This document shows, one piece after another, positions 1 to 32,404 of a DNA stretch of 64,000 bases. The first letter of the stretch is position 1. Each line of letters opens with the position of its first letter. Source of the DNA: Convolutriloba macropyga (Eukaryota); the NCBI RefSeq assembly GCF_964194025.1, contig NW_027453069.1:1-64000 (forward strand), read 5' to 3'. A model generated the notes under the pieces. It was not told where the DNA came from. It worked only from the letters and a program-made list of their open reading frames with translations, and made no database searches. Made by a program: the position numbers and the translations under genes.

Positions 1-1
1 C

Positions 2-2418: not shown

Positions 2419-2419
2419 A

Positions 2420-6345: not shown

Positions 6346-6394
<49 letters not shown>

Positions 6395-9715: not shown

Positions 9716-9939
9716 GATCAGATGTGGGATCAGCCGGGTCTGGTTTGAGTCCGGCTAGGGATCGGTATCAGCCATCTGCACATGGTCTGCTGGAGGAGGA
9801 GGTGCAGACCCAAACAAACAATGATGCACGCACGATTTTTACACCACATGTGCCTTGCGCACATGCAGCCGGGTGGGTGCGCTCCGCGAGCCCTGGAGCC
9901 CGGCCTGCATGAAAAAATCGGCATCTGGCCAGGACATGG

Positions 9940-11427: not shown

Positions 11428-14400
11428 CTAGCTGGCCTTGTTGTCATGTATCCCATGTATCGGATGCGCAAGCCTGAGATTGAATCCCATGCTCTGCAAT
11501 CGCTGGAACACCTGTTGCACAGGGAGACAACATGGCGGATCGTCTTCAAAAAAATGCTACGAGTCGATGAAATCTTCTCAAGCGTATCTACTCCGCGGAA
11601 GACCGGCACAAGAATCGCGCAGTGCTGCCTGCGACCATCCCCGGTCATGGGTGCGGCAAACCGGTGTTGCAGTGTCTCTAGCTAGGGGGGCCTGTCTGTC
11701 TATACCGCCATGGGCCCTCTCACCCGCATGCTTAATTTGTCTCGTGCTGCAGACCACCCGAAAGCCCGAAAGACAATTCAGTGACACAGCTGAGACAGGC
11801 GTGATGCATACCTGAACCGTCAACTCAAAGGAGTGCACGTTCGTGAAGCCTTGGACGTTGTCAAAGTAATGATACCTTGCATTTGGACGGCCACACAGGT
11901 CAGTTGCTCGGATGACATGCAACCTTCCCACAGAGCAACAGCAACCTGGTTGGGGGCTGCCACAGCCGCACCTTGCGGGCGCATTGGATGTCCTTTTGTA
12001 TGCCTGGATGGTCACAACACAACCGCAAAGGTCGGGGCAATCACCGTCACACTCAGAGGTGGGCAGACGCAATGTCCCATGTGTTGCTACGATTAGTGCG
12101 ATGAGATTTCAAGGGGCGGTTTTCATCAGAAAAGCAGCGGTGATTGGCGCTGAGCTTGTGGAATCTTCCTGGTCAAGTGTCTGATGCTCTTTTGCTTTGG
12201 AGGAGCAATGCCTACCTCAAAGCCGTACAAATCTATTGTATCGCACATCTCAGCTGCAAAAACCATGGCAAACCATCCGCTCGTAGGTTTCTTGTGCTTG
12301 TAGCTCGCCTGCACCTGCCGCAGCCCAAGCACACACTCCGGTCATGGTGGCGGAAGGAAGGAAGGCAGGAAGGAAGGGCGGCCCTTGCACAGAGCTCAAC
12401 CCAGAACTGAGAAAGGACACTCACAGCTAAGAGAAATTGTCAGACAGCCGCCAATCAGATGGCAGATTCTCGCTTGGGTACCAACGCACGGCAAAACAGG
12501 CTCGCAAGAAACGCATAGAGCGCAATTGTAAAGTCAAAGCAGACCAGCATCGTAAACAGCTGTCCCATGCCTACGTGGTTTCTGCCCAGGCTAGCAACGA
12601 TGACGGGTGAATGCCTCGCTGTGGCTCTGCAGTTCGCTTGTACGTCCCGGCTGATTGTGATCCCGTGGGGAGAGAATAATATCCTTTTGGCCCAAAGGAA
12701 GTGCGACGGTGCGTTTGCCCTGCCCAGCCGCACAGGGCGACAGAGCGAGAACTCAACTCAGACGCGCGAGGGACGAGAACCACGTCTCTAGAGAGACGCA
12801 TGTTTCTGGGCTGGTGATCCCTGACGGATCATGCACTTCACCGACGCCAGGCCCACCCCTTCTTTCCAGCTGTTTCTGGTCAGCTGACCATGGATCGCCC
12901 ACTGACACTCAGGCACGGCTACCCCAGGGTAGCTGAACGTGGTGTATAGACCAGGCCGGCTCTCCTGCCTGCTCTGGTAGATTCATAGAAATATGCCTCA
13001 CAGCAGTGAGATTCTGTCATCGGGATTCCCAACTCTAACCGCCAGCACCAGGTGGGCTGTTTCTGGGCGTGGGTGACTCCCAAAAGAAAGGCGTAAAAGA
13101 TGGAGAGACAGAGCGACGGGGCTTGGGTCTCTGCTGCCTAGGCCATTTTACCTCTTTGCCGATGAGCAGCGTCATGCGTCTCCACAACTCAAAGGCGGCT
13201 GACGTGAAGTCTGGTGACACAATCACCATGTGCAGCAGCTGGGGCGGAAATCTTTCAACAAGACTCATGTACAATCGAAAGTAGGCCTGCCACGGGTCAG
13301 AAGGTGGCCGCAGAGCAGTGGGGACACAGAAGGTATCACTGCCCTGGGTTGGCCTCACGTAAAGTGGTGGTGGCGCAGCATCACACCATCCACCGGACAC
13401 GGAACTTGGCAGCAAACAATACCAACAAAACCCGGGAGAGGGGCGGGTGCGGCGTCAACACGCGGCGATGCTCACTACCTGGTATATCGTGGATTCAAAC
13501 AGAACCAATCGCCCCTTGTCTTCCGCAAAAGCCTTGGCTTTCGTCGCATCTCCGGTCGCCAACTTCTTAAAATGAGCATGATTGATAAAACCGTACGTAG
13601 TTTTGTTTCCAACGTACGTCTCATAGCCCTGCACAGCGCCACAAAAAAGAGTATGGTGCGGCGACTTGTCTCTGATTGCCTGCAGAACGTGCAGGTGAGA
13701 AGGTACGGCTCCCTGTGGGCCGCACCCACATGAGAAATGCGGCTCCGCCAACCAAGAGCCACAGCAAACACGATCCTGGGGACCACATTCTCCACACTCT
13801 CTGGCACACGGCAAAAGGGGCGCACCTTGGTTGGTGCAGCATTCAGCCTTATCACAGCATCGTGGGAATCGATTTCAACCCCGAGCTGGCCCTGAAGCAA
13901 TTCGCCGCTGTTTCCGATGACTGCGCAAGTGCGATAGTGCAGCGTCGGCGCCGTGGCCGGGAGGTGGTCCAGCATCTCCGGCGGGAACTTGTACATCCCG
14001 ATCCCTTGCTCAACCGCCAGTTGCGCGGCCATCCCATGGAAGTTGGCTCCATCCCCGTTTGCAGTTTTGCTCCACAATGGGTATGTGAGGGACGCCCTGC
14101 ATTCAGATTGGCGCAGTGAGGGCAATCGCAGGGTGCGAGAGCAGGCTCCTCCCGGGAGGTGCACATGGCAACAGCCCTGACTGCAGAATACCAGACATCG
14201 CCCGCAGCATACCTGAGGCCGCTACTTGCGTTCCCCGGGGTGCCATCCGTGTAAAACTGTGCCTGCAGTCCAGTTCCCGTGTGCGCTTTATCCACACCAA
14301 GGAACTGCAAATCGGTAGGCGCTCTGAAAAACAGCGTGATCTCTCGATCAAACACGGAGAATGGCTCAGAAACCCGGCTATTATGATGCTGGAAAGTCCA

Positions 14401-15073
14401 CGTACCGAATGCAGCAGAAAGTGCACCTCTCCGAGATCCAGCAGGGCCATCCTCCATCTGCTGTGAATCGTCGAGGGGAAGAAGAAGTGCTGCTTCCCTG
14501 TCACATTCTGTCAGGACCACCGGCAAACGTCACACGGGACTCCGTCAGACCCAAGCAGATGTAGGCATGGCATGCAAAGAATGGGTTAATGCCGGAGTGG
14601 CGGCCGGCCACCTGCTTGTCTGTCGGATATGGTGCCACAGGTCCAAGTGCAGGGGAGCTCGTGGCCTTCAGAAGATTGGGCGGTGAGCGGTCAAGATGCA
14701 GCGGGCTGTCATGATCCGGGGTTGATGCGGACGCGGTGCCGTGGTGTCTTTCCAAGGCGGCTGGCTCCGGGTGGTACATGAGATAGTCCCACCTGCATGC
14801 AAGGGCGAGGGCAAAGGAAGCACAGCGATGAGTCTGCCTGCTTCAGTCGCGCTGCCCGGCCCTGCCAAGACAGACTCACATCAAACCAGCCAGTTGTCAG
14901 GGACGCCATCATTGTGCATTAAGGCCAGCAACAAGTCTCTCGTGGCAGAAGAAACTGGCAGTGTCCCTCTACCATTTCACAGCGCTGGCTCCAAAGATAA
15001 GCAACAGGAGGCCCTGCTGCCAAAGGAGGAGTCCACCGCTTTCTTTGGAGACTTTCTTAGCATTGCTCTTCAT
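11428..15073 (-). CDS. Glycosyltransferase family 29 (sialyltransferase-like) type II membrane protein; multi-exon
   Basis: N-terminal hydrophobic anchor (LLLWQQGLLLLIFGASAV). Sialylmotif L: TCAVIGNSG..LGVEIDSHDAVIRLNAAPT|GYETYVGNKTT. Motif S: PTSGWFAMVFAAEMCDTIDLYGF. Motifs III/VS: YHYFD..HSFE. Probable last exon VFQRLQ...KAS*. Confidence 0.88.
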
Positions 15074-15419
15074 GTTGACTCAGGGTACATGAGGCAGCCA
15101 AGGTGCTGCCCAGGGGCAAAGGTATCGCAGAGGTGCTGCAGGGCCACACAAGCACATGTTCAAACTGCAAGCTGCCGCTCCAGTGTCGCTGCTGACAGTG
15201 AATGTGGCAAATGCTGTGAAGGGTGAGTCGAGTCATATGTACATGTCATTTTGTTTTCAGCAGCAACTCCGCTGTCTACAGGTGAAAGGCAGCTGGTAGG
15301 TAGCGATGGTCGTAACAGGAATCAGGATACACAGTTCGAGACACCGCAGACCGATAGGTTGGGGTCTTGGGCGTTGGGTCCTGACTGATTTTTTTTTCAT
15401 GCCTGACTGATGTCACGGA

Positions 15420-16480
15420 CATGTATAATAAATTCGAAATTAATAAGCACCGGCTCGATTCTCGACATGTGCATGATAATATACCATCAAGTATCGTAGT
15501 ACTCCTACTAGTACTAGACGAGTAGTAGCGATACGAATCCTGCGCTGTACTCGATCTCAGCTACGTAAAACTACACATATATCCCGGGATATATAGCGAT
15601 ATATAGCGATAGCTGAGACAAGCAGACGTTGCCGGGCTGGGTACAAAAGGAGGGTCTGGGGTAGGTGCTCGTAGGGTAGTAGGTAGGGTACCTATAGCTA
15701 TAATAGTATTTATAGTAGCTCGCCACCCGGCCAGTAGGTAGGGGTACCAAAGCATGTGCTTGGGTAAGAATAGGCCAGTACCAGTACGAGCAGGAGGAAT
15801 ACCTGGCGTACGCATATATATACGAGTACGAGTACAGTACTCGTATAGATGATGAACTTTGAACATTTTTTTTCACCCCCCCGGGAGAAGGTGGGTCGAA
15901 AAACCCCAGCAACATAATATGCAGCGCTCTCTAGAGGTACGTAGCTACTAGAGCAGGCTATCAGCTATGGGCAGACCTCGCTAGTCGCTAGCTATTATTT
16001 ATTATGGTAGCGGTAGACCTCCTGGCTCGTATCCTTATAATATAAAAGTGAAATGGTGTCAGTTTGTATGTTTGTATGTTTGTATGTATGTTTGTATGTA
16101 TGTTTGTATGTATGTTTGTATGTTTGTCACGTTCAGCTTAATATTGTAATAATTAAGGATTATTATGATTTTAAGGGCCCGGGCCGCAGGCCCGGCCGGG
16201 CCGGAGGCCCGGGAAGGTCCGTGTCCGTGCGTGCGCCACTTGTATAATAATAAGGATAGTCGATACTGTAGGAGATACCTAGACGTCCTGCGAACATGAG
16301 CATGATGATCGACGATCGTCGATCGAGCTGAAATCGATCGAGATCGATCGCGAGCTGGGCTGCTGATCCTGCTCTTAATAATCGTACTCGTACTCGTTTA
16401 TTTCGAAAACACGGGATCGACGATCCTGGACGATCACCTATCTATTATCTCTCTAGTACGAGTAGCGATAGTTGTTCACG
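15420..16480. promoter_or_regulatory. GTAC/CTAG/GATC-rich island between the divergent GT29 and Nup54 genes (putative bidirectional promoter region)
   Basis: Dense gtac, ctag and cgatcg words. Lies between two head-to-head genes. Confidence 0.4.
16032..16242 (+). mobile_element. Non-autonomous Helitron-like mini-element
   Basis: Sits between A and T. Starts TC(CTTATAATATAAAAG), contains a (TGTA/TGTT)n microsatellite and subterminal GC hairpins (ccgggccgcaggcccgg, ccgggccggaggcccgg), and ends CTTG. Confidence 0.6.
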
Positions 16481-17095: not shown

Positions 17096-19195
17096 ATGTC
17101 GCCCTTCGGTGTCGCTTCCACCCCGGCCTTTGGAGCCAGTCCCGCACCTGCCTTTGGAGCGACCCCAGCGCCGGCCTTTGGAGCTACCCCGGCGCCCGCC
17201 TTTGGAGCTGCCTCGGCGCCAGCCTTTGGGGCCAGCTCTACCCCTGCGTTTGGGGCCAGCTCTACCCCAGCCTTTGGCGCCAGCTCCACTCCAGCCTTTG
17301 GGGCCAGCTCCACTCCAGGTTTTGGTGCAGCTGCCACTCCTGCCTTTGGGGCTAGCTCCACCCCAGCTTTTGGTGCAGCGCCGGCAACTCCGTTTGGGTC
17401 CACTCAAACTCCCGCATTTGGAGCGACCTCAGCTCCCGCATTTGGAGCCTCCACCCCTGCCCTTGGAGGTATACATCGACCGTGACGGGTGTTGCGCAGT
17501 TGTCTGCCATTTCTTTCTTGCTACGCTGTCTCCTTTCAGCTGCATATGTATTCGCAGTTTGTGTTGTGACCGGTGCTTGCCCCTGCCTGCAGCCGCCAGT
17601 ACACCGTCATTGTTCGGCGCCGCCTCCACAGGTGCCAGCCTGTTCGGAGCCGCACCGGCAGGTCAGACCCCGAGTCTCTTCGGCGCCACCCCTACTCTTG
17701 GCTCCTCACCGGCACCTTCCCCGCTGTTTGCAGCAAGTACGCCAAGCATTTTCGGAGCTGCCACTACCACGCAGGTAACCAGCTATCCCGTGCCATGCTG
17801 TGATACTACTCCCAGATGATCTCCCATGCATGCACCTTTCGCCTGCTTCACTCCTGGTTTGCATCGATTCGAGCCACCCATTGCTGCCCAACCTCTGTGC
17901 CCGTCCCCCTGTCACCTGTTTGCGCAGTTGGCCCCCTCCATGTTTGGCGGGCCTGCACCCGGTGCTACACCGATGGGGGGGAATGAAGCGGCGATGCGGG
18001 AGCTGCAGGTGGGGTATTGTTGAACCATCAGGCTTCCACATGGAGTCAGCGATTTCCAGCTTCTGATGGTGCTTGTGGCTTTGCTTTGCGTGTGTCCTCG
18101 GCCGAGTATTAGCGCGGCGCGACTCGTGAAGGGCTCACGTTGTCGCTTAACAAATGTGATCCCGCTTCCCCGTGTACTGCACAGGCCATTGAGGAGGCTT
18201 ACCGGCCCGGCTCGTCTCAGTCTGCGTTCACATTCTTTCTATTAAATGTTGTTGACAACGCTCAGCGCTTCACGCCCCCGAACGTCGATGGGCACAAGTG
18301 GCGTGAAGCCATGAAACAGAAAGCTCAGGAGCCGTACTCTGATCGCCTCTGGCCAGTGCAGGTGGGCCTCATCTGCGTTCGCTCGACTGCCTCATCTTGA
18401 TTGCTTGCACGCCATGTTGGACAGCAGTGAGCGATTGCCAGTGAAGCTTCAAAACCCACCTGGCCCACCTTCCTGGCATTGTGTGGTTTTGCCTATCAAA
18501 GCACCTGAAGTGTGCAAACGATATCCGCCCGCCAGGCAACAGGGTTCAGCGACCTGTTGGCGAGGCGAGCTGCTCAGGATGAAGCCATCAAAGAGAATGA
18601 AGAGCGACTGGCAGCACTGCGAGCTGCTGTACGCCAGGTTTCTCGCAAGCATGAACTGGGCATCCAGGAGCGCAAGCAGGGGATTGTTCGTCGGCACCAG
18701 GTGCTCGCACCATTTTTTTCTTTGGTGGGTTTGGGGTTTGAGGAGAGAGGGGGGGGGGAGGGGGCAATGGTGGAGCCATCAATGCGGGTGGCATCATGTG
18801 GCATTTACTCTTTCCGTAGATGCACACCGGCAACTCAGGCGTTGGAATCGTGACCACAGGAGCTGTGTCATCACCTTCTTCGTGTTGCTCGTTGGATTGA
18901 TGGCGCCGAAGGGCGGTTAGCATCCAGTATGGGCGGCAGTGCCACCCAGGCAAGCACCGGATCTGACCACTTTCGTGCTTCTCCTCTGTTCTCCCTGTTG
19001 GTTCTGGTGCGAGTCGCCCCGACGAGCCTTAGCATGCGCTGCACTGTCCCTTGCAGGGTCGCGATATCTTTGAGTATCATCGTTGGATTGCAGCTATCGA
19101 AGCTGCTGTTGCTCCATCCAGTGCCGGTGGCTTGCAGCGGCAGGTGTGCCAGCGTCCCTGCCGGGCAGAGGGGGTGCCTCTTGGCTGGCAACTTC

Positions 19196-20293: not shown

Positions 20294-21549
20294 ATTAAAA
20301 TAATAAATAATAGTAGCGTGTCATGGCGTAGGCGTACGCCAGCGTACGTACGCATATCTAATTTTAGGCTGTCGAGCTGTCATGTCGTACTACGTACCAC
20401 TTGACAGGGCAGCAGTACTACTGTTTTCATGTTTCCTTATCCTTGTTTTGATCCTTACTTAGTGGCGTCACACAGAGCGGACACTCGCTTTGTTGTGATC
20501 GCTCGACTCGAATCTCTACCGTACGTCTTTTTTCAGGTACTCGTAAACCGTTACGTACAGTCAGTACGTACGACCAGTTTCCGTGTAACTTTTCTGTTGT
20601 TTTCGTACTATTTTCGTACTTTCCGTGCTGTTTTCGGACCCGTGCAGCAACCGAAAGCCATTCCGCGGCTTTCCGCGCCAGCGGACCCCCAGAAACCGCA
20701 GTTTTCGCGTTCGACCAGCCCCTAGGCTCGCACCAAGTGTGCAGCTTAACATTTCGTTGTCGACTATCGTTTTAGATCGCGATTCCGTCCATCGCCGACC
20801 CTAATTTGATCATTGTTGGGTGTCAGGTGATAGGCATTGCAAAACCTGAGCAGATTCACTAGAAGCGAACTTCAACCTGGAGTTTGAACAACAAAGTCAC
20901 TCTTTTTCGTACGATTCGAACGTTTCTAGACCCTTTGGAACGATTAGATCACCTCACTTTACTTGAAAACATCGATCACAACAAAGGTTCATAAGGGTTT
21001 AGTGGCAAAAGTGCCAGTTCGACCTTTTCTCAGTTGAGCAGCTGGTGACCTGTGGCCGCGAGTGCCAGTTCACTAGTTAGGGACTTAGAAACCGTGGACT
21101 TTGCGGGAGCCCGTGGATTTGCGGGACCGACGTGGACTTCTCGGGACTCCTTTGGAGAGGGCCAAGACACCAGTGCATTGACTTATCTTGGTCCTGGAGC
21201 AGCGAGAAGAAGTGACAGACAGTGCGCTGACATCCATAAAGCTTTCGGGACGGTTAGTGGTGCCGTTGAGGGTGCCCTGCCGTTCAGTTAGTTACGGGCA
21301 TTCACCGGTTGCAGTGCCGTTTGAGGGTGCTGCCTCTGGGGGTGTTCCGGTTTGGACCAGCAACCTGTCTGTTGCAAGGCAGTATCACGGGATAAGTGGT
21401 ACACTGCCGCAGACACCAGGCTATCCAGCTGGCCGTCTGTCGAAGACTTCAAGCTGAAGACCATACGAGCTAGGTGGGAGCTTGCACACTCTCCCCAACG
21501 GGCAGCTACGAGACAGCCACAGGGACAGCCCCACAGCTGCAGAGGCGAG

Positions 21550-21655
21550 GCTACACAGCTACACAGCTACAGCGCAGCTACACAGCTACACAGTTACAGC
21601 GCAGCTACACAGCTACACAGCTACAGCGCAGCTACACAGCTACACAGCTATACAG
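21550..21655 (+). repeat. ~4 x 27-bp tandem repeat in the Gypsy 5' leader
   Basis: Unit gctacacagctacacagctacagcgca. Confidence 0.85.
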
Positions 21656-22362
21656 CCGCACAGCCCCAGCTAGGCACACCCAGCGTGGATACAGCTCGCC
21701 GGCCCTAGGACGACCAGAGTTTCCCCAGCTCACAGCAACAGTTTTATAGCAGTATTTTCAGCCCAGTTTGGTCAGCAGTTGGACTTTGGTCAGCCGCTGA
21801 CAGAGCAAAGCAGTCCAAACCCGCCACCGCACAGTTCCCAGACAGCAGATTGCATCCGCACTGCACAGCACCGCATCAGCACGAGCATTCGTGGACGTCC
21901 TGGGACTTGCTTCCGGGGGCGGGGATTGCCTCCCGTTCTCGGGGGCAGCCAGGTGGAGCGCCTGGGGACATACAGCGCGCAACCCAAAACATAACCACTC
22001 AACAGTCGGGTCCCTGCTCACAACTCGCCCGAGGGCATCAGGCCGACGGGTCTCCGTGGGGTGAACAGCACCCCTGGGTTGTGGAGTGTGCGGGGCTAGT
22101 GGTATTGGGGGGCGGACCGGTCACTGTCCTGGTCAGCGTTTCTACACCTGTCAGCATTTCTGTTTCCTGCGGCTGCGCCACCGGTCGATCCACCTGCGCC
22201 ACCCCAAGGTCACCACATCCCACCGGACCAGATCAGTCCTGGACAGCCAAGCTGTAAGCGGACCCACACCACAGTCACCCAGTCCACCGACCAGAAGCCA
22301 TTGAGAGCCCCGGCGAGGAGTCACCACCGCTGACACCCCGGACTCTTATCAGGGCCATCACC

Positions 22363-25300
22363 ATGCCAGTCACTACCAGGGCAGGCAGTAGATCGGAGGC
22401 GTCACGAGCTGTTGATTTTGCAGAGGACGCGGCTTCTTCCAACACACCTGGAGAGGCACCGCGCCGGTCAGCAGGCACCATTGTTGATGCCTTTCACGAC
22501 ACCGCCGTCCGTGCCCAGGAGGGTGATCTCAAGACCTTCGGCGGGACAAATCAAAATCTCCCAGTATGTGCGCGGTATCAGAACCCGCAACGTACACCGT
22601 TCACCGAGTGGTTCTATGAGAACTTCACGCCCAACGTTCTGGTGCCCATGTCCCGACGCAAGTCTCGCAGACTCCAACCCCACGAGGAGTACGACTACCT
22701 TCATCAGTATCTGGACAAGAGTGACACCCAGATAATGTACGCGGCACGTAAAGCCAGTTTGACCCAGGAGCTTCATCTGCAAAGCCTGATTGTGGATGAC
22801 ATTCGGCCAAACACCATGCCGGACATCACAAATGAAGAACTGGCGACGTGGCGTTACAACCAGGCTACAGCTCATGAGTACAGGATGCTCATACATGAGC
22901 TCGGGGAGTTGACACCCAAGCCGATCATGAAGGTAGCTCTGGAGGAGATGGTACGGGACGGGCTGGCCGTGAACCCCAGTACTTTTGAAGACCGCTACCG
23001 CAGTGTTGCAGAGCGGATCAGTGCTTCAGTACAGTGGACAGAGCTCAACTTACAGTTTTTCCTGAAACTGGTTCATCCCTGGTTGAACACAAGCAACCTG
23101 GGGACCAAGAAAATTCGGGACACCATGGAGGAGTTGGGTGCGGTTCTGTACAGTGAGACAGACCAGCTGGAACCCATCAGGAAGAAGGTTGAGACAGAGG
23201 AGAAGACTACCATGAACATGGAGCTGGCCTTCCGCGAGTTGGCTAACCGATCCCAGACCCTCCATGGTACAACTGTGGATCCGGTGTTGCTCAGCATTGG
23301 TTTGGGCCTACCAGCCAGTGCCGATGGGAGTCTTCCGAGTACAGATGTAGCCCCGCCAAAGACCAAGCCAGCCAGTGATGGCAAGGCTAAGGCCGAGACT
23401 ACTCTGAACGGGCAACGAGGCATCTACACCCGCAACGGGAAGGTGTTTTTGCCCCTGTGTAAGTCGTGCACGGCTCAGGCTTCGCGCGCAAAGTATCACA
23501 ACCCCAGCCATTGCCCCAGAGCCAAGAAGGACGACGAGGCTACCACGAACGTGGCAGCGGGCGGCGAGCCAGCCCCCAACACCAAGGGCAAGGGCAAGGT
23601 TGGAGGAGACGAGTCTTCGGATCAGGTCTCCAAGTTGGTTTCGGAGGTGTCGAAGTGTCTGGCGATGATGCAGAGATCGCCCGGCATTCCAAACCTGGAG
23701 TGCTGGAACTGTGGAGAGAAGGGCCACGGGTACTGCGAGTGCCCCAAACAGCTCTCCATGGCTCTCCAGCAACGTCTGACTTTGCGGCCTGTTGAGAAGG
23801 CGCGCAGAGAGAGGTACCTCGCGGCTCATTCAAAAGGCGGTAAGACTGCTAAGGCATCTGCTTCTGACAGCAAAGCGCCACTACGCAGCGCCCTGAAACC
23901 CAGCGTCGAGAGTCTGCAACAGCAGCTGGTCAAGATGACCGAGCAGCTGCAAGCGTTGCAACAGCCAGACAGCGGTTCCACGAGTGTGGCCAGAGAGTCC
24001 AAGTCTGATCGCCATGTTCATTGGCCAGACATGGAAGAGTTTGAGATGGGCGGTGACAGCAGTGATGCTGGCACCGTGACACATATGCAGGGCTATGATC
24101 AGGTGGCCAACCCACCGCCCCTGGCCTCTGCTATGTTCCAGTTGGGATCAGCGCTGGCGGACGCTAGCGGCCAGTCCCAGTACGGAGTGAAGGGGATGAA
24201 GTGGCGGAAGACAGCTGCAAACGAGGCGGGCACCGAGCCCCCGCCCCAGCCCGAGTCATCTGACACGGCACAGCAGCCCGCCCAACAGCAAGTACCTCAG
24301 GAAGTCCCTGCGGAGAGACCGCGCCCCCGGGGCCGGCCCAGGGTGTTGCCGAGAGGCAATCAGAGGGATCCCGGCCGAAGGATGGAAGTTCCTGGCTGGG
24401 ACCAGCAACGGTCCATGTTGGATCACCGACCTGTGGGATTTGAGCCAGCAGGCATGCAGCCGGATGCTGCTCCTGCTACACATGGGACAACTGGAACTGA
24501 TCGGGCACCTAACAGAGAATCCCGACAGCTACGCCGGGAGCAGATCTACCATGCTCTGAAGGCAGCCCTCCAGAACGCCCGATTCAGAAATTTGGATGTG
24601 AGTGTGGTGACAAACACGGATGAGCACACACGCAGGCTCTGGAACCAAGCCCGGAACCAGGCCTTGCTTGGAGTGCTGGACAGCCGTGATCCATACTCAG
24701 TTGCGTGGGATGCAGCTCTGCAGGGTTGTGCAACACACTTCTTTGCAGCCGCAAAGCTACAGTTGTATGACCTGCTCCAAGATTTCTCCTCGATCTATCG
24801 AGCTGCAGTCCAGTCTGTTTTCAGTGTTACGCTACCAGAGAGTGTTGAGTTCCCGTGGGAGCTGCCAGATGTGATGACCCTGGAGGAGGCAGCAAGAGGC
24901 GGTCAGCCACCTGTCGAGCCGACCCGCCAGTTGCCCCAGTTACCCCCGTCATCACCACCAGGAGCCCCACCACTGGCACCGCCGCCATTGATGGAACACA
25001 TGTCTGTGGACGAGGAAGGGGCCGCAGCCCGTACGCAGGGCCCCACGACAGTGGCCAGCATGACACAGCTGGGCCACACTTTGGCACAAGGACAGCCAGC
25101 ATGCTTCAAGCGCACGCTCTGTCCAGTGGAAGCGCGTAAGCAGCTGACCCCTACCGAGTGGCAGGCACGCCGGCAACGCTGGCGGGCTCACACTGGCAAG
25201 CAGCCGGTGTACCGCCGCCCTGGGTGCAGCAACATTCGCATGGATCTCACTACCATTGAGATCTGTGGGCTTCCAGTAAAGGCCGGCCTTCTTGATGGTG

Positions 25301-28300
25301 GGGCTGACGTGGCCAGCTTGAACAAGTCGTTCGTTGACCGCCTGCCTCCTCACATCCGGACTATGTTGGCAGCGTTCCGCATGACCGGGATACACGGCAC
25401 TGCAGAATGCCAACAGTTAAGAGGGCCAGGCTTGGAAGTGGCGATTAACCCAGGCACAGATTGGGGGCGGGTCATCGAGCACTGGCCCCGCTTCGCCATA
25501 CTTGACAGCCCTGATCTCCCCGATGTCATCATCGATACATCACTGATGGGAGCCTTGGGAGTGTTTCAGATCTACGACGGCCATCACGCGTTCTATCAGC
25601 TGGACCCTGACTCCGGCGAGTGTGGGGAAATCCCGCTCGAGCGCGCAGCGCTGACAGCCACAGCTTCTGAACTCCTCAGGACCCTGCACAAACCGACCGC
25701 CGCTACTGCGTCACCGGTTTGGGGGGGGGAAGGCATGGGTTCACACTATGACCCAGTCAATTCTTTTTCGGATTTCAGTGGTCACTTGTACTTGGCACGA
25801 GCTGAAAGCTCACACAGCCAGCCGAAGGACACAGGCACATCGCTCAGAAGCCGTATACCTTCCTGGACTGACCAGCGCCAAGCCAAGGGCCCAGCTTTGG
25901 ACTCGCTACGCAGCAAGGTGACAGCCGCGCAGTTGGCAGCAATCCCAGCCCTACCCCACACTACACCTGAAAAGGTCTTTGTGGCAGATCTCCGGCGCTA
26001 TGGAGGCAAGTCCGGGGCTCAAAGGGAGCTCCACGTATGTGCTGGTGACCTTACTACCCTTGCACAGAGATTGCAAGATGGGGTCCACATGGAGGATGTT
26101 CAGATCATGGACATCAGGTACCAGGACAGTAAGGAGAGACAGCGGGCACGTAGCCAACTCAAATGGCTACACGACAGGTACCCGGACGGGTTACCAGAGA
26201 CAGCCATATCAGACTGCTTCAGGCTGGCACGGGTGGTCAACCATGATGCAGCCAGTCTCACAGCCCCTGTCGTCATGGAGTATTGTGGTCGAGTGGACCA
26301 TGTGGCAGTGGAGTTTCCGTGCACCGACACATCTTCACTGGGCTACCAACTGGGTCTGAGAGGCAGCCGCACAGGGATCATAGTCCCGATTGCCGAATGG
26401 CTGTTGGACCTCCAGTTCATCCTGGCCGTGGACCGAGGATTTGCTGACTGGAGTGCAGCCCCTGCCCAGTTTGGATGGACGATTGAAAATGTGGACTTCC
26501 GACCGACTGCGCGAAGCAGCCCTGAAGTTCACGAGGCTTACGATTGGATGAAGAGAGTTTTCGGTGAGCCGGTGAACCATGAAATTCACCTAGATGGAGA
26601 CCCGACTGCGCGTACGTCCCTGTGGTGGTGCAACATGTTCACCCAGGACTACTACCACTCAGTCAGGGATCAGTTTCATCGTCCACTCACAGAGACTTTT
26701 GATCAGGTGGTGCGCGAGATGACCGGCGGCAAGCTGGCAGCACAGATCGCCTCAGTGGACAACCCACACACTTTGATGGGTGGCCTGAACCAGCCAGGGG
26801 AACGCATGATTGTAGCCCCCAAGATGGTGAGCCGTCCGGATACACAGTCCCAACGCGTGGACCCAGAGACGGGACGGCCAGGGGCTGGCATGCTTGAGGT
26901 GGTGGGCAGTGTTCCCAGGCAGTACGTACGTTGCCCAGCCGTCATCCGTGAGCGGTTGCTGAAGGCTCAACCTGGCTTCTACACGCGTCCTGAGCTGGAC
27001 CGCACAGAGGACCAGATGGTCAGAGCAATCGGCAACATTTGCGCGCCCACATCGGTTTCTTGTATTACCCGAGTCCAGGTGGCGTATGCCCACCAGAGGG
27101 AGTTTGAGGCATGGCTCAGACTGCAAGCTAGCTCCCTGCGCCTGGATGGAACCGGACAACGGAAAGCAGTGCAGGCCCTGCAGCAGTCAACCCGTGAGTC
27201 AACGGTGACAGACCCCGACTACACCGTCAAGTTACAGCGGCTCAACGCTACCGCCAAGCGCCAGTTGACAGCAAGAGCCAAGCTACACCGACACGGTGCC
27301 GGACTCACCGTTGCGGGACGCCACTGGCTCAACACAGTCAGGTTAAAGGCCAGAGAGGTTGAACGGAAGGCAGCAGCTGCCCGGAGGCAGGTTGCCATCA
27401 ACCGACTACGCCGATTGGGAAACAGTGATCCAGGAGGAACCGCGCCGAGGGCCAGCCACTGTGATCACCGTGCCCCGTTGTTGAACATTTTACAGTGGCT
27501 CAGTGTGGTTGCAGTCACTTGTGTGACAGCTTACGGATTGGGTACCAATGCGGGAGTGGCTATGCTGGCAAACCAGGCTACACAGGCACCAGTGCCTGAC
27601 CTGCCGACAGCAGAGCAGGAGCACGACCCGGCACCCACAGACCAGGTTTTGGCCCGTTGCTATGCCCACTTTGCTAACGAGCAGTTCACTGGCAAGGCCG
27701 AACCTACAGTCAAAGTACCCAGCAAGCTGGTCAACCAGAAGGATGGGATCAAGCACGAGTGGGAGGTGTCAGAGTCCTTCACCAGGGCAAAAGAGTTTGC
27801 CGCCATGATGGACGAACACCCCGACACATACGCTTGGACACTCAAGGGACTGAAGCCTGTAAAGGCAGATCCCTATGAGTTTGAGTTGGTGGACGACAAC
27901 CCTGTTTTCAAGCGGCAGTACCATCTCGCCAAGCGGGAGCAGGACTTCGCCGACGAATGGGTGAAGGAGTTGGAGGACGCCGGGTTGGTGCGGGAGATCA
28001 ATTCTCCATATGCAGCTCCTGTGGTGGTGGCCCCGAAGAAGGATGAGTCTGGAGCATGGTCAGACCTGCGGTACGCCATCGACTATCGCGGGCTCAACGA
28101 GAAGACAGTGCGGGACCAGTACCCCTGCCCCACTGCAGAAGAGATCATGGCCAGGATGGAGGGAGCCACCCGCATCACAACCTGCGACGCCTTCAAAGCC
28201 TTCCATCAGCTGTCAGTTTCAGAGAAATGCCAGAAGTCTATGGCTTTTCATGCTGGCAACAGGTTGATGACTTGGACGCGTATGCCGTTTGGGCAGACCA

Positions 28301-30270
28301 ACAGTGTGGCCGCGTGGCAGCGGGTGATGGACTCAGCACTGAGAGGCATCCCCTATGCAGCCGCATATGCAGATGATGTGATCATCTGGTCGGGAGATGA
28401 TGAGCAGGAGCACATTGAGAGGGTGCGCGAAGTGATGGCAGCTCTGAGGAAAGCTGGCATCCAGGTGGCAGCCAAGAAGTGTCATCTGGGCCTACGCCGC
28501 ATCGAGTTTCTGGGCCACATCGTGGGTACAGGAGGCATCGAGCCGATGTACTCCAAGGTGGACGCCATCAACCGCCTGCCGCCGCCCAAGAGCCAGACGG
28601 AAGTGAGAGCTTTCCTGGGGATGGCGACCTACTACTGCAGGTTCATCCCAGCTTTCCACAAGTACAAGGGACCTCTCACCGCTCTCACCAAGAAGGATGT
28701 CAGATGGAGCTCTCAGACATGGGGACCCGACCAGCAGGAGGCATTCCAACAGATCAAGGATCTGCTCGTCTCCGCGAAGGTGATGCGCAACCCAGATTGG
28801 AGTAAGCCATTCATCTTACACACTGACTGGTCCAAGTCAGGTGTAGGGGCTACTCTGTCACAGGTGGATGATGACGGTGTGGAATACGCCATCGCGTATG
28901 CTTCCCGGACCAACAGCCCTGCAGAACAGTCATTTTGCAGCTACGAAGGGGAGGTCAGTGCAGTGCACTACGCGGTGCAGCGGTTCCGCTACTACCTGTG
29001 GGGGAGGCGTTTCAAGTTGATCACTGATTGCAAGGCCATGCAGTGGCTCCGGACTACCGCGAAGCTTCGCGGTAAGCTAGCGCGATGGAGCCTGCTGCTC
29101 GCCGAGTATGATTTTGAGATTGTTCATCGCGCCGGCAAGGACAATGTGGTACCAGACCTTCTCAGCCGCCTGCCCACAGAGGACCTGCGCATGACAGAGG
29201 ACACAGATGGGTCACTCACCGGCACGGCCAGCTACACAGCTCAGCATCCGGCACCCACTCAACAGCAGCAACGCTTTGCAGCTTTGCAGGCAGCAGCAGC
29301 TTTCGTGGCCGGCAGCACTGATGTATTGGCCCTGACAGAGGACCCTGGCACACGTGACATCTATGAGTCACCAGTGGCAATCAACTTTGTCAGAGGTGAC
29401 CTCAACAGAACTGATGTGACTTCCCAGCAGTGGACCAAGTTACAGTCACGGTGGAGGGCGTACAGCTATGCCAGAGACAAGGTCTGGAGGACCATCGGCA
29501 AGCACGGCGCTCTAAAGCTTGAGGTGCCACCACCTGAGGAGAGAGTGGACATTATCAAGAGGGTTCACCACAAGATCGGGCATCTTGGCAGGGACCGTAC
29601 CTACCATATGGTGTCCTGGTATTATTGGTGGCCGGGCATGCATGCCCAAGTTGCTTCTGTGTTGAAACAGTGCCTACAGTGCGACCGTGTCAGGTCCACA
29701 TTTTCAGTCAAGCATGATCGTCTGAAGCCAATGCCAATCTTCGGCATGTTCTACCGGTTCAGCATCGACTCAGCAGGCCCTTTTCGTCCCAGCAGCACCG
29801 GCATGCAGTATGTTGTGGTGATTGTGGAGCATTTCAGCAAGTGGATCGAGCTGGTTGCTATACCGGAGCTCAACCCAGCACAGACAGCTCGTGCGTTCCA
29901 GGAGCGAGTGCTAGCTCGGTATGGAGCACCAGTGGAGTTAGTGTCAGACAACGGCCAGGAGTACCACGGAGAGTTCTCAGACCTCCTGCGCCGCCATGGA
30001 GTCGACCAGTTGGAGATACCTGCAGGCAGGCCGTCTACGAACGGGATGGCAGAGCGCATGGTCAAAGTGCTCAAGTCTGCACTCAAGAAATTTGTGGAGA
30101 ACCAGGGAACACTGACCTGGGATACGTGGCTTCCAGTAATCGAGTTCATAGAGACAAGACAAGACTCTCTCCATTGTTGGAGCAGTACAATTTCTTTCTT
30201 TTTACACCCGTACACTGACACACAGTACGTCCACGGCAAGCGGCCATTATTCTTTAATTATTATCTCTAG
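22363..30270 (+). CDS. Gag-Pol polyprotein with inserted C5-cytosine DNA methyltransferase domain (2635 aa; last ~40 aa probably read-through into flanking DNA)
   Basis: Zn knuckle CWNCGEKGHGYCEC (23701). Protease LLDGGA (~25290). DNMT motifs at 26020-27040. RT: SPYAAPVVVAPKK, IDYRGLN, MPFG, YADD (28366). RNase H: FILHTDWS, EGE, ITDC, DLLSR. Integrase: H-x3-H..CLQC, IDS, SDNG, NGMAER. Confidence 0.93.
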   Translation: MPVTTRAGSRSEASRAVDFAEDAASSNTPGEAPRRSAGTIVDAFHDTAVRAQEGDLKTFGGTNQNLPVCARYQNPQRTPFTEWFYENFTPNVLVPMSRRKSRRLQPHEEYDYLHQYLDKSDTQIMYAARKASLTQELHLQSLIVDDIRPNTMPDITNEELATWRYNQATAHEYRMLIHELGELTPKPIMKVALEEMVRDGLAVNPSTFEDRYRSVAERISASVQWTELNLQFFLKLVHPWLNTSNLGTKKIRDTMEELGAVLYSETDQLEPIRKKVETEEKTTMNMELAFRELANRSQTLHGTTVDPVLLSIGLGLPASADGSLPSTDVAPPKTKPASDGKAKAETTLNGQRGIYTRNGKVFLPLCKSCTAQASRAKYHNPSHCPRAKKDDEATTNVAAGGEPAPNTKGKGKVGGDESSDQVSKLVSEVSKCLAMMQRSPGIPNLECWNCGEKGHGYCECPKQLSMALQQRLTLRPVEKARRERYLAAHSKGGKTAKASASDSKAPLRSALKPSVESLQQQLVKMTEQLQALQQPDSGSTSVARESKSDRHVHWPDMEEFEMGGDSSDAGTVTHMQGYDQVANPPPLASAMFQLGSALADASGQSQYGVKGMKWRKTAANEAGTEPPPQPESSDTAQQPAQQQVPQEVPAERPRPRGRPRVLPRGNQRDPGRRMEVPGWDQQRSMLDHRPVGFEPAGMQPDAAPATHGTTGTDRAPNRESRQLRREQIYHALKAALQNARFRNLDVSVVTNTDEHTRRLWNQARNQALLGVLDSRDPYSVAWDAALQGCATHFFAAAKLQLYDLLQDFSSIYRAAVQSVFSVTLPESVEFPWELPDVMTLEEAARGGQPPVEPTRQLPQLPPSSPPGAPPLAPPPLMEHMSVDEEGAAARTQGPTTVASMTQLGHTLAQGQPACFKRTLCPVEARKQLTPTEWQARRQRWRAHTGKQPVYRRPGCSNIRMDLTTIEICGLPVKAGLLDGGADVASLNKSFVDRLPPHIRTMLAAFRMTGIHGTAECQQLRGPGLEVAINPGTDWGRVIEHWPRFAILDSPDLPDVIIDTSLMGALGVFQIYDGHHAFYQLDPDSGECGEIPLERAALTATASELLRTLHKPTAATASPVWGGEGMGSHYDPVNSFSDFSGHLYLARAESSHSQPKDTGTSLRSRIPSWTDQRQAKGPALDSLRSKVTAAQLAAIPALPHTTPEKVFVADLRRYGGKSGAQRELHVCAGDLTTLAQRLQDGVHMEDVQIMDIRYQDSKERQRARSQLKWLHDRYPDGLPETAISDCFRLARVVNHDAASLTAPVVMEYCGRVDHVAVEFPCTDTSSLGYQLGLRGSRTGIIVPIAEWLLDLQFILAVDRGFADWSAAPAQFGWTIENVDFRPTARSSPEVHEAYDWMKRVFGEPVNHEIHLDGDPTARTSLWWCNMFTQDYYHSVRDQFHRPLTETFDQVVREMTGGKLAAQIASVDNPHTLMGGLNQPGERMIVAPKMVSRPDTQSQRVDPETGRPGAGMLEVVGSVPRQYVRCPAVIRERLLKAQPGFYTRPELDRTEDQMVRAIGNICAPTSVSCITRVQVAYAHQREFEAWLRLQASSLRLDGTGQRKAVQALQQSTRESTVTDPDYTVKLQRLNATAKRQLTARAKLHRHGAGLTVAGRHWLNTVRLKAREVERKAAAARRQVAINRLRRLGNSDPGGTAPRASHCDHRAPLLNILQWLSVVAVTCVTAYGLGTNAGVAMLANQATQAPVPDLPTAEQEHDPAPTDQVLARCYAHFANEQFTGKAEPTVKVPSKLVNQKDGIKHEWEVSESFTRAKEFAAMMDEHPDTYAWTLKGLKPVKADPYEFELVDDNPVFKRQYHLAKREQDFADEWVKELEDAGLVREINSPYAAPVVVAPKKDESGAWSDLRYAIDYRGLNEKTVRDQYPCPTAEEIMARMEGATRITTCDAFKAFHQLSVSEKCQKSMAFHAGNRLMTWTRMPFGQTNSVAAWQRVMDSALRGIPYAAAYADDVIIWSGDDEQEHIERVREVMAALRKAGIQVAAKKCHLGLRRIEFLGHIVGTGGIEPMYSKVDAINRLPPPKSQTEVRAFLGMATYYCRFIPAFHKYKGPLTALTKKDVRWSSQTWGPDQQEAFQQIKDLLVSAKVMRNPDWSKPFILHTDWSKSGVGATLSQVDDDGVEYAIAYASRTNSPAEQSFCSYEGEVSAVHYAVQRFRYYLWGRRFKLITDCKAMQWLRTTAKLRGKLARWSLLLAEYDFEIVHRAGKDNVVPDLLSRLPTEDLRMTEDTDGSLTGTASYTAQHPAPTQQQQRFAALQAAAAFVAGSTDVLALTEDPGTRDIYESPVAINFVRGDLNRTDVTSQQWTKLQSRWRAYSYARDKVWRTIGKHGALKLEVPPPEERVDIIKRVHHKIGHLGRDRTYHMVSWYYWWPGMHAQVASVLKQCLQCDRVRSTFSVKHDRLKPMPIFGMFYRFSIDSAGPFRPSSTGMQYVVVIVEHFSKWIELVAIPELNPAQTARAFQERVLARYGAPVELVSDNGQEYHGEFSDLLRRHGVDQLEIPAGRPSTNGMAERMVKVLKSALKKFVENQGTLTWDTWLPVIEFIETRQDSLHCWSSTISFFLHPYTDTQYVHGKRPLFFNYYL
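26000..27090 (+). other. C5 DNA methyltransferase-like domain within the polyprotein
   Basis: Motifs appear in canonical order: I ELHVCAG (26026), IV EFPCTDTSSLG..GLRGSRTG (26311), VI IENV (26482), VIII ARTSLWWCN (~26608), IX IRERLL (~26945), X RAIGN (~27022). Confidence 0.8.
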
Positions 30271-30374: not shown

Positions 30375-30622
30375 TGTCAGAAGGGTACAAATCATCCGTA
30401 CCCAGGTACCTAGTACCTACCAAGAACGAGATACACGCGCTTCAGAATTCCGTCATCCTGTTTCCCATACTTTCCGTCTGACTCCCTTTTTCTCTCTTTC
30501 CGTCTGATTCCCAGCGCTAGCTTTCCAAGTATCGCGCATATGCTCTCTTTCTCTCGATCAATCCGTCCCTATAAATATAGTTGTTTCCACATGATGTAAC
30601 ACATTAACACAGGATTCTAACA
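30375..30622 (+). repeat. 5' LTR (248 bp)
   Basis: tgtcagaagggtac...ggattctaaca; contains TATAAATA. Confidence 0.95.
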
Positions 30623-30874
30623 TGGTTTCGGAGCAGTAATATCCTGGGATATCCTTCATTTCTGGTACTCTACCGCCTGACAATTACAAACTCACTGACA
30701 AGAATCTACTCTGGACAACTGAACCCGACCTGGCCTGACCTGGACTCTTATCTGATCTACTGGACGTTCTTACTGCCGAACTGCCTGCTGGACGACGTAC
30801 CCTACTCGGTACCTCGGAACTCCGTACTCTGAAATTCCTGAACCCGACCGGGACGGCCCGCGACTCTGCCGAGC

Positions 30875-32119
30875 ATGCCGCCGAAACCTGCTGCCGGCCA
30901 TGGCCCTGTCGGGGCCGCCCCTGGCACTCCGACTCCAGAAACTCTGGCATCACTGACTGCTCGCATCGAAGAACTGGAATCGCTCGCTAAACAGCAAAGC
31001 GACGAGCCACGACCAAGACAACTAACCTATGGGAAACTCGTGTCCCCAGGACCTTTCTCCCTGCCCCACAGTCGCCTTACTGACGAAAACCTTTCTTCTC
31101 GAACTTACACCAAACTGAAGTGTTCTCTGTACCCCACCGGTTTTGTCCGTTGTGACCCTAACAACCCTCCGGAAGGTTTGAAGGGGGTGAAACCCGCCGA
31201 TGTTCCTACTTTCCAGGGGACTGATTTTCCTGAATTTTCCAAATTAGCACTGTTCAACTTTATGGCGGGCTACGACCCCATCCTCACCGAGGCCCTACTA
31301 GCCGTTCATGATGAACATCCAACCAAGGCCCACAACATGTCTACTCAACGCCAAGCCCTCCAACTACTCAAGAGTGCCCTAAGCCCCTACCAACCTGCCG
31401 CCGATCTGCTTTTACTCGTACCTTATGAGAGCAAACTGCCTGCCGCCGATGCCTGGAGCATGGTCCACACCCATTTTACTCGTGGTATCCTACTAAGTCT
31501 TGGACGTCACCTGCGAACATGTATCTCCCCACAATATTCTTCAGAGACCGCGATTTCTTACATTCATCGCGTTCTACTCGCTCGCGAAAATTGCCACTCA
31601 ATTCTCCCAAACTGTGTCTCTGATGATTTGGCCAGCGTCCTAATCCTTACAGGATTATCGTCCATGTACGCGAGTACTGCAGAAAAATTGTGCGCGAACT
31701 ATCTGGACACCGTCCCCTTCATCGATGAAATTCGTACTATGATCCTACTTAACCAAGGCTATGACAACGAGCACCTCCCCAAGACCTACTCAAACCCTCA
31801 GCAGACCCCTCCGAACCCTCCAGCAGGGTCTCCGGCCGTTCTGACCACTGCCGCGCCATCTTCCAAGACCCCACCAAGCCCTTGTTTTCATTGTGATCAG
31901 CCCGGCCACTGGGCGTGGGCATGCCCTAACCCTAAGGACCCAGTCGCTTTTGCCTCATGGAAAAAGGCTCGCGAGGAGCGCCGCTTCAAGGCTCGCTACC
32001 CTACTGCTCAAACACCCAACCCTAAGGTCCAGGATAACCCTACCGTCCAGATCAGCTCCGTCCCAGCGGGGGACAGTTCTCCCCATAACGATCTCTTCGG
32101 GTTCGACTACAGTGGCTAA
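30875..32119 (+). CDS. Copia-type Gag protein with CCHC zinc knuckle (414 aa)
   Basis: Capsid-like segment DAWSMVHTHF..ETAISYIHRV..VSDD..ILTGLSSMY and knuckle CFHCDQPGHWAWAC. The stop lies ~37 bp before the 3' LTR, with no pol. Confidence 0.85.
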   Translation: MPPKPAAGHGPVGAAPGTPTPETLASLTARIEELESLAKQQSDEPRPRQLTYGKLVSPGPFSLPHSRLTDENLSSRTYTKLKCSLYPTGFVRCDPNNPPEGLKGVKPADVPTFQGTDFPEFSKLALFNFMAGYDPILTEALLAVHDEHPTKAHNMSTQRQALQLLKSALSPYQPAADLLLLVPYESKLPAADAWSMVHTHFTRGILLSLGRHLRTCISPQYSSETAISYIHRVLLARENCHSILPNCVSDDLASVLILTGLSSMYASTAEKLCANYLDTVPFIDEIRTMILLNQGYDNEHLPKTYSNPQQTPPNPPAGSPAVLTTAAPSSKTPPSPCFHCDQPGHWAWACPNPKDPVAFASWKKAREERRFKARYPTAQTPNPKVQDNPTVQISSVPAGDSSPHNDLFGFDYSG

Positions 32120-32156
32120 ATCTACGTACGAGTACCTGGCTACGTCTGAGCGGGGG

Positions 32157-32404
32157 TGTCAGAAGGGTACAAATCATCCGTACCCAGGTACCTAGTACCT
32201 ACCAAGAACGAGATACACGCGCTTCAGAATTCCGTCATCCTGTTTCCCATACTTTCCGTCTGACTCCCTTTTTCTCTCTTTCCGTCTGATTCCCAGCGCT
32301 AGCTTTCCAAGTATCGCGCATATGCTCTCTTTCTCTCGATCAATCCGTCCCTATAAATATAGTTGTTTCCACATGATGTAACACATTAACACAGGATTCT
32401 AACA
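32157..32404 (+). repeat. 3' LTR (248 bp)
   Basis: Matches 30375-30622. Confidence 0.95.

Follow-up and report, generated by a model that had tools for sequence, protein, structure and literature searches.

Retrotransposons that carry a DNA methyltransferase (DNMT), the enzyme that hosts use to silence them, form a rare, so far little understood variation on the conflict between genomes and genomic parasites. The closest described system is KnitGypsy-Dnmt3 of the charophyte alga Klebsormidium nitens, in which a Gypsy Pol polyprotein includes a Dnmt3 domain, the repeats follow a DIRS-like layout and the ratio of non-synonymous to synonymous substitution rates (Ka/Ks) is < 0.2 (PMC5890265; de Mendoza et al. 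2018); the element is called 'streptophyte Gypsy-DNMT3' in later work. DNMT3 members are known from long terminal repeat (LTR) and DIRS elements of streptophytes and dinoflagellates (PMC12344493), and the capture of DNMTs by retrotransposons is recurrent (PMC5890265; bioRxiv 10.64898/2026.05.21.726589). The survey of 2018 counted DNMTs by means of the Pfam profile PF00145 in 96 genomes, with Tetraselmis not among them (PMC5890265). The present analysis concerns a window, that is, the whole stretch of 64,000 nucleotides at positions 1 to 64,000 of contig NW_027453069.1 (assembly GCF_964194025.1, filed under Convolutriloba macropyga), and within it one retrotransposon copy. We consider it likely that this copy is a Ty3/Gypsy-type element with a DNMT3-like C5 methyltransferase in its Pol polyprotein, and that it represents a diverged, Tetraselmis-type branch of the Gypsy-DNMT assemblage. 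To the reports of retrotransposon DNMTs from Symbiodinium, Klebsormidium and, recently, Cymbomonas and Euglena, the analysis thereby adds a chlorophyte, Tetraselmis-type family.

Comparison of KnitGypsy-Dnmt3 with the window family reveals four shared properties. Both hold an intronless DNMT3-like domain inside a Gypsy-type Pol open reading frame (ORF). Both combine Gypsy-type proteins with an A-coding-B-A-B layout of repeats, as described for the Klebsormidium element in the legend to Fig. 4c of PMC5890265 and as found here in the related copies L001, L003 and L009. The DNMTs of both are under purifying selection, with a Ka/Ks of < 0.2 for KnitGypsy-Dnmt3 and 0.02-0.05 for the window family. 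Lastly, both reside in green-lineage algae, a charophyte in the one case and a Tetraselmis-type chlorophyte in the other. This contrasts with the way the two come to light, where KnitGypsy-Dnmt3 was found through PF00145 and the window DNMT lies below the threshold of that profile. The features of the window copy, all on the forward strand, are as follows.

20319..30238, + strand: whole retrotransposon copy, 9,920 bp (blastn against L001, ends read directly)
20319..20972, + strand: terminal repeat A1 (comparison with full-length relatives)
22363..30270, + strand: Gag-Pol ORF (ORF reading, Pfam, comparison with the Pol protein P0001)
23701..23742, + strand: Gag zinc knuckle, Cys-X2-Cys-X4-His-X4-Cys, aa 447-460 (read from the sequence)
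25288..25308, + strand: aspartic protease active-site motif, Asp-Gly-Gly-Ala in the window copy, aa 976-982 (read from the sequence)
25915..27120, + strand: DNMT3-like C5 cytosine methyltransferase domain, aa 1185-1586 (AlphaFold2 model, Foldseek, hhalign, conservation)
28033..29109, + strand: reverse transcriptase (RT, aa 1891-2054) and RNase H (aa 2120-2249) (Pfam)
29527..30033, + strand: integrase, with an H2C2 zinc-binding domain (aa 2389-2445) and the DDE core rve (aa 2478-2557) (Pfam)

Structure prediction was decisive for the middle of the polyprotein, where the modelled domain adopts the fold of a C5 cytosine methyltransferase. An AlphaFold2 model built on the family alignment A1 reached a mean predicted local distance difference test (pLDDT) score of 91.4 and a predicted template modelling (pTM) score of 0.90. 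When this model was compared with the PDB by Foldseek, ranks 1-28 were occupied by the catalytic domains of DNMT3A/B/C (E 3e-10 to 3e-8, probability 1.00), with template modelling (TM) scores, normalised to the target, of 0.67-0.74. These were followed by M.MpeI, M.HhaI and Dnmt2, the last at rank 44-45 with an E-value of ~8e-8 and a TM score of 0.59. All of the 50 PDB matches listed are C5 methyltransferases or Dnmt2, and 127 matches reach E ≤ 1e-3. Named matches in the viral library BFVD are likewise nearly all C5 methyltransferases, with poorer superposition than in the PDB. An earlier reading of the window made from the sequence alone (the sequence-only reading) had placed a C5 methyltransferase at 26000-27090. 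The fold it expected is the one recovered, with no other fold among the matches listed, and its location stands; its extent is larger by conservation and structure model, at 25915-27120.

Inspection of the model indicates that the motifs lie where the fold expects them. Motif I follows strand 1, motif II has its acidic residue at the end of strand 2, Pro-Cys comes after strand 4, and strand 5 closes with Glu-Asn-Val. The full motif order of a C5 methyltransferase, I, II, III, IV, VI, VIII, IX and X, is confirmed in the window, with the motifs at the following residues of the Gag-Pol ORF (+ strand).

aa 1226-1231, + strand: motif I
aa 1250, + strand: motif II, acidic residue
aa 1294-1295, + strand: motif III, His-Asp
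aa 1319-1320, + strand: motif IV, Pro-Cys
aa 1375-1377, + strand: motif VI, Glu-Asn-Val
aa 1417, + strand: motif VIII, Arg
aa 1529, + strand: motif IX, Arg
aa 1557-1558, + strand: motif X, Gly-Asn

Between motifs VIII and IX lies a large, family-specific insert that presumably recognises the target. With the catalytic domains of DNMT3A/3B/3C (PDB 6u91, 6w89, 8tci) the domain has in common its order of motifs and a catalytic Cys and Glu. In contrast, identity to these enzymes is only 11-14%, the window domain spans ~400 rather than ~285 residues and has the VIII-IX insert, and it is part of a retrotransposon polyprotein with neither a PWWP nor an ADD domain.

Conservation was assessed across 14 non-redundant members of the family, each from a different 90% cluster and reaching down to ~30% identity. 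All 14 keep the motif IV Cys, Glu-Asn-Val and the motif VIII Arg, and the same holds for the acidic residue of motif II, His-Asp of motif III and Gly-Asn of motif X. The sequence-only reading had described the catalytic Pro-Cys and the Glu-Asn-Val as intact, which agrees with these counts and with the Pro found in the window copy itself. It had also made its case depend on the domain being present in other full-length copies, and in every one found, across the 14 clusters, the domain is there with intact catalytic residues.

Several observations weigh against assigning the domain and its element in this way. The sequence-only reading had pointed to PF00145 as the profile to consult, and here its expectation failed, as neither the whole ORF nor the excised domain matches PF00145 in Pfam even at E ≤ 10. 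NCBIfam, TIGR00675 included, gives no match for the window domain; a phmmer search of the domain against PDB sequences returns nothing significant; and a profile of the family finds only M.HhaI in the PDB, with an E-value of 1.8, around the catalytic loop. Within the motifs, the Pro preceding the catalytic Cys is kept in 8 of the 14 members and the motif I Gly in 12, the window copy having both. The assignment of the modelled domain to DNMT3 follows structural rank, not phylogeny, and no Klebsormidium sequence is among the matches returned by the protein searches. Lastly, the observed/expected ratio of CpG is 0.68 in the element versus 0.70 in the rest of the window, and transitions at CpG between copies show only a 1.9-fold excess. 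With depletion equal and the excess this small, there is no clear sequence mark of special methylation, and a methylation footprint was rejected as a candidate signal, the element being no different from its surroundings.

The relationship to known methyltransferases becomes visible when relatives of the window domain are included. PF00145 is detected below threshold in 3 of the 11 members of alignment A1 (best E-value 5e-4), and TIGR00675 in one family member (E 0.05). A word-indexed search yielded ten polyproteins in which the domain is conserved, 37-99% identical in the DNMT region, and an exhaustive phmmer search of 1.84 billion representative proteins gave just 57 matches. The weak tail of these matches (P0060, P0062, P0057 and P0063) consists of proteins that lie above the Pfam threshold for PF00145. 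Profile-profile comparison by hhalign joins A1 to P0060 with 98.6% probability (E 6e-16) and to P0062 with 98.7% probability (E 3e-16); both alignments cover the entire domain, and the Pro-Cys and Glu-Asn-Val of the family fall on those of P0060 and P0062. The top PDB sequence matches of P0062, from Cymbomonas tetramitiformis, are DNMT3C/3A/3B, tied with M.HhaI at an E-value of ~1e-3. As read from these alignments, the link of the window domain to PF00145 is transitive, running through PF00145-positive proteins. That DNMT domains can sit below the Pfam threshold bears on every PF00145-based survey of DNMTs.

These comparisons bear on whether the motifs could resemble a methyltransferase by chance, the stretch being an unrelated Pol spacer or some other domain. 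The window copy on its own, with no Pfam, NCBIfam or significant PDB sequence match, would allow such a view. We nonetheless give it virtually no credence, because fold, profile-profile homology and family-wide invariance agree: a confident model matches C5 methyltransferases in two structure libraries, the hhalign comparison to PF00145-positive proteins reaches E 3e-16, and the motif residues are invariant. Chance resemblance is refuted by the AlphaFold2 model, Foldseek and hhalign.

To understand the constraint acting on the domain, dN/dS was computed by the Nei-Gojobori method for two pairs, the window copy versus L001 and the window copy versus L009. For the DNMT domain the ratio is 0.023 against L001 (25 synonymous and 2 non-synonymous changes) and 0.046 against L009. 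RT-RNase H gives 0.095 and 0.029, and the whole ORF 0.096 and 0.076, for the two pairs respectively. Codon comparison thus shows the DNMT domain to be under strong purifying selection, as strong as that on RT and integrase, and the methyltransferase is constrained as tightly as the enzymes of replication. The linker between DNMT and RT (27121-28030, aa 1587-1890) is the fastest-evolving part of Pol, with a dN/dS of 0.13-0.20; it has no Pfam match and includes an extended hydrophobic segment, a possible membrane helix.

We infer both an enzymatic activity and a biological role from these patterns, and two other roles for the fold were weighed against DNA methylation. In the first, the fold would be catalytically silent and would have a regulatory or scaffolding function like that of DNMT3L towards DNMT3A/B; it could, for instance, recruit or modulate host methyltransferases or bind DNA. 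Replacement of the motif IV Pro in 6 of the 14 members, a motif I that departs from the usual pattern and the failure of every curated profile to recognise the domain are all compatible with this role, as is the Klebsormidium Gypsy DNMT domain, which gave no methylation signal in yeast in a test that its authors call inconclusive (PMC5890265). Loss of catalysis is, on the other hand, not what the invariant catalytic and donor-binding residues lead one to expect: down to ~30% identity, 14 of 14 members keep the catalytic Cys, Glu of motif VI and Arg of motif VIII, along with the residues of motifs II and III that bind the methyl donor. The dN/dS of 0.02-0.05 and the fact that the best PDB matches are catalytic DNMT3A/B/C chains argue in the same direction, and we regard a silent fold as unlikely.

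In the second, the domain would methylate RNA as Dnmt2 does, with the genomic RNA of the element or its primer tRNA as the target. Dnmt2 is indeed among the structural matches (rank 44-45, E ~8e-8), RT comes directly after the domain in the order of the polyprotein, and RNA methylation has been raised as a possibility for retrotransposon DNMTs that are inactive on DNA (PMC5890265). In contrast, DNA-bound DNMT3 structures superimpose at TM scores of 0.67-0.74 versus 0.59 for Dnmt2, and the bridge protein P0062 matches DNMT3 and M.HhaI by sequence, not Dnmt2. An RNA substrate appears to us quite improbable. For DNA methylation by retrotransposon DNMTs the published precedent is mixed, with de novo CG methylation in yeast by the domains of SymbioDIRS-Dnmt3 on the one side and the yeast test of the Klebsormidium domain described above on the other (PMC5890265).

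The remainder of the polyprotein is that of a Ty3/Gypsy element. A single Gag-Pol ORF of 2635 codons spans 22363-30270 on the + strand without an internal stop or frameshift. The sequence-only reading had reported an uninterrupted frame of 2635 aa with a series of quoted motif strings, all of which are present and in the order it gave, namely zinc knuckle, protease, six methyltransferase-like motifs (aa 1224-1562), RT, RNase H and integrase. Pfam identifies RVT_1 at aa 1891-2054 (4e-24), RT_RNaseH at aa 2145-2249 (5e-31), RT_RNaseH_2 (2e-30), Integrase_H2C2 (1e-16) and rve (6e-9), and the order protease, RT, RNase H and DDE integrase of a Ty3/Gypsy Pol is present in the window ORF. The only integrase domains that Pfam reports are rve and Integrase_H2C2, with no phage-integrase (tyrosine recombinase) domain.

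For the zinc knuckle and the protease, the motif residues that the sequence-only reading had noted are conserved in relatives, while significant Pfam support is absent from the window copy. The Cys and His positions of the knuckle are conserved in all eight relatives covering the region, and Pfam zf-CCHC, faint in the window copy, is significant in the relative P0006. At the protease motif, the relatives covering the region keep the Asp in 9 of 9, the next Gly in 9 of 9 and the Ala in 8 of 9. Pfam gives no protease match within the window's family; the more distant relative P0104 matches Asp_protease_2.

The ends of the element are those of an integrase-borne insertion. Its termini read TG...CA, and a 4-bp target duplication, AGCG, stands at 20315-20318 and again at 30239-30242. 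The same combination of TG...CA with a 4-bp duplication is found in four of four insertions, with AGCG in the window, CGTA in L001, GAGG in L009 and CTGA in L003; insertions of this form are what a DDE integrase produces. The window copy and L001, which belong to one assembly, are 97.1% identical in DNA over 10 kb (blastn).

Inspection of the full-length relatives L001, L003 and L009 reveals an arrangement of split direct repeats, A1-coding-B1-A2-B2, in place of paired LTRs. The A repeats measure 655-811 nt and the B repeats 64-171 nt, and A1 is identical to A2 at 654 of 655 positions in L001, 672 of 672 in L009 and 806 of 811 in L003. The joint between B1 and A2 reads CA-AT-TG in the three subfamilies, in other words the right terminus of the element followed, after two bases, by the left terminus. 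Taken together, the DDE insertion marks, the split repeats and the end-to-end joint offer a sequence-level handle on how ends are regenerated in hybrid elements. These joints (within L001 18500-19326, L003 16152-17092 and L009 14790-15805) resemble a built-in junction of the circle type. No ordinary pair of full-length LTRs surrounds the ORF within the window, which is explained by the split repeats of the relatives together with a 3' deletion in the window copy, where A1 and one B alone are retained. Between A1 and the ORF lies a leader of ~1.39 kb (20973-22362) that contains no ORF of at least 150 codons, and the same is true of L001.

The 3' deletion also accounts for the unusual end of the ORF. 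Relative to L001, the window copy is without ~1.44 kb of its 3' part, through one or two deletion events that took the last ~220 residues of Pol with the PHD finger, one A repeat and one B repeat. L001 encodes the Pol protein P0001 of 2817 aa, which is ~98% identical to the window over shared codons. Since the natural stop was deleted, the window ORF runs on beyond the right end of the element and terminates in the flanking sequence. These comparisons uphold the domain order that the sequence-only reading had given, from Gag through protease, DNMT and RT to RNase H and integrase, but the ORF is not a complete Pol. From its sequence the window copy is judged defective, with DNMT, RT, RNase H and the integrase core intact. 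A nested insertion was considered as the origin of the odd ORF tail and rejected, because the target duplication does not enclose the small LTR-gag element at 30375-32404. This small element starts 136 bp downstream of the DNMT element, and its 248-nt direct repeats (30375-30622 and 32157-32404) are 100% identical and flank an ORF of 414 codons (30875-32119) with a weak zf-CCHC match. It looks like a young, Gag-only, non-autonomous LTR element.

The family to which the window copy belongs is diverse and has recently been active. The ENA assembly ERZ25071359, in which the window forms part of contig ctg32338_7x_l (84,935 bp), holds at least five diverged subfamilies, with DNMT identities of 99, 84, 53-56, 45-46 and 44%, and further members occur in ERZ25071366, ERZ25878734 and the metagenome ERZ23487362. 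The window's own 90% cluster counts eleven members, five of them 2816-2818 aa in length, which points to recent activity, and several near-identical full-length copies are present in the window's assembly. In full-length relatives (2726-2855 aa) the C-terminus is formed by a PHD finger, which in P0001 occupies aa 2764-2808. The named close relatives are all gene models of Tetraselmis striata, and it is for this reason that the host of the element is most likely a chlorodendrophycean green alga; the suggestion of the sequence-only reading that the host is another alga is consistent with this.

When the PF00145-positive protein P0063 was used as the starting point of a search, a wider group of polyproteins emerged in which Gypsy domains occur together with PF00145 and, at the C-terminus, a PHD finger. 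This group includes P0104, P0103, P0110, P0115, P0118 and P0122 (Closterium sp. NIES-53), and no description of it as a named family was found in the literature searched. KnitGypsy-Dnmt3 probably belongs to the same assemblage. P0104 has the order protease-DNMT-RT-RNase H-integrase-PHD, which is the order of the window plus the PHD finger. The DNMT likewise precedes RT in P0122, and it lies between RNase H and integrase in P0110 and in P0064 (Chlamydomonas eustigma). The window is 34-38% identical to the group across RT-integrase and 22-27% across the DNMT, and the DNMTs of the group pass the Pfam threshold whereas that of the window does not. Kinship of the window family with KnitGypsy-Dnmt3 itself is indirect, the nearest streptophyte protein among the matches being P0122.

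Two contigs of this group deserve separate description. P0104 lies on L011 (ERZ25067493 ctg159469_5x_c), an 18.4-kb contig that the assembler flagged as circular and that is made up of head-to-tail units of 8,262 bp (1-16272); it could represent units in tandem, an extrachromosomal circle or an artefact of assembly. At 12069-13234 of L012 (Closterium sp. NIES-53, GCA_949281275.1), the integrase is followed by a pair of 248-nt direct repeats, 918 nt apart, as would fit repeats ordered B-A-B in this streptophyte relative. The gene model of the Closterium DNMT-Gypsy element on L012 is a chimera with a Copia RT.

Against this background, a chlorophyte Gypsy element could have captured a host or viral DNMT independently and founded a lineage apart from streptophyte Gypsy-DNMT3. 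Such a course of events is possible, if doubtful in our view. It would fit the identity of just 22-27% to the PF00145-positive retrotransposon DNMTs, the absence of a Klebsormidium protein from the matches, the two positions of the DNMT in the wider group, before RT or between RNase H and integrase, and the recurrence of DNMT capture (PMC5890265; bioRxiv 10.64898/2026.05.21.726589). It is harder to reconcile with P0104, which has the full order through to the PHD finger, a C-terminal module that is rare and common to both, with an unusual split-repeat layout that is also that of the Klebsormidium elements (PMC5890265), and with DNMT domains that are detectably homologous to each other. Because domain order, PHD finger and split repeats are shared, descent as a diverged branch of the KnitGypsy-type lineage is at least as likely as independent capture. 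Elements of this kind are already known from a charophyte alga and from dinoflagellates; what is added is a Tetraselmis-type host lineage, since a full-text literature search found no report of a DNMT-bearing retrotransposon in Tetraselmis or other Chlorodendrophyceae. The separate lineage that the sequence-only reading had envisaged is thus only partly supported, as the element shares its domain order, PHD finger and split repeats with the wider group.

The remaining described systems differ from the diverged Gypsy-DNMT branch proposed here in their enzymatic equipment. SymbioDIRS-Dnmt3 and SymbioLINE-Dnmt of Symbiodinium (PMC5890265) are, like the window family, retrotransposons that encode a C5 DNMT, and SymbioDIRS resembles it further in having the DNMT in Pol and split repeats. 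In contrast to the DDE integrase, TG...CA ends and 4-bp duplications of the window element, SymbioDIRS uses a tyrosine recombinase and SymbioLINE an endonuclease, and both reside in dinoflagellate hosts. EpiLTRs of Cymbomonas tetramitiformis and Euglena gracilis (bioRxiv 10.64898/2026.05.21.726589) share with the window family that they are LTR retrotransposons of algae or protists which pair a DNMT with a chromatin reader. In EpiLTRs, a DAM adenine methyltransferase and a chromodomain accompany a DNMT4-related DNMT at the 3' end of pol. In the window family, protease and RT flank the DNMT, a PHD finger takes the place of the reader, and no DAM or chromodomain match was found in the window ORF, P0001, P0003 or P0006.

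How such an element would make use of its methyltransferase can be outlined from the domain order. The DNMT domain would be translated together with Pol and then either cut out by the protease or left on the N-terminal side of RT, so that it would travel with the replication machinery. It would use S-adenosyl-methionine to methylate DNA cytosines, most plausibly those of the cDNA that the element has newly made or of the copy that it has just integrated. The PHD finger on the integrase tail may read histone tails at the insertion site and help to choose the target chromatin, and its pairing with the DNMT suggests that the site of insertion and the target of methylation are connected. Suggested benefits, which are speculation here as they are in the literature, include blending with host methylation, protection of the cDNA and damping of the element's own activity. 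Taking the split repeats and the wider group together, one may tentatively envisage an old set of integrase-bearing retroelements of the green lineage that carry a writer and reader pair, a DNMT3-derived methyltransferase and a PHD finger, that restore their termini with the help of an internal copy of the two ends joined together, and whose chlorophyte DNMTs have drifted beyond the reach of PF00145. If such an old lineage existed, domain-based surveys would have systematically undercounted retrotransposon DNMTs in algae.

Elsewhere in the window, several further repeats were observed. A tandem array at 45784-47238 consists of at least 12 copies of a 105-nt unit, mostly 95-97% identical, and is overlapped by long ORFs on either strand, among them one of 683 codons at 45558-47609 (- strand), none of which has a Pfam match. 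A second repeat family at 53251-54522, with units ~192-195 nt apart and 68-93% identical, lies inside an ORF of 609 codons (52706-54535, - strand), also with no Pfam match. A 98-nt repeat occurs at 1841-1938 and 2321-2418, 100% identical and 480 nt apart, and flanks the L003 element on both sides (6588-6666 and 17430-17508) at 95-100% identity. It represents a dispersed repeat of one genome, possibly the end of another mobile element. The only clear fragment of a host gene found is an exon-like ORF at 13478-14164 on the - strand, which matches glycosyltransferase family 29 (sialyltransferase-type) with an E-value of 4e-14 and whose sole database match is its own contig.

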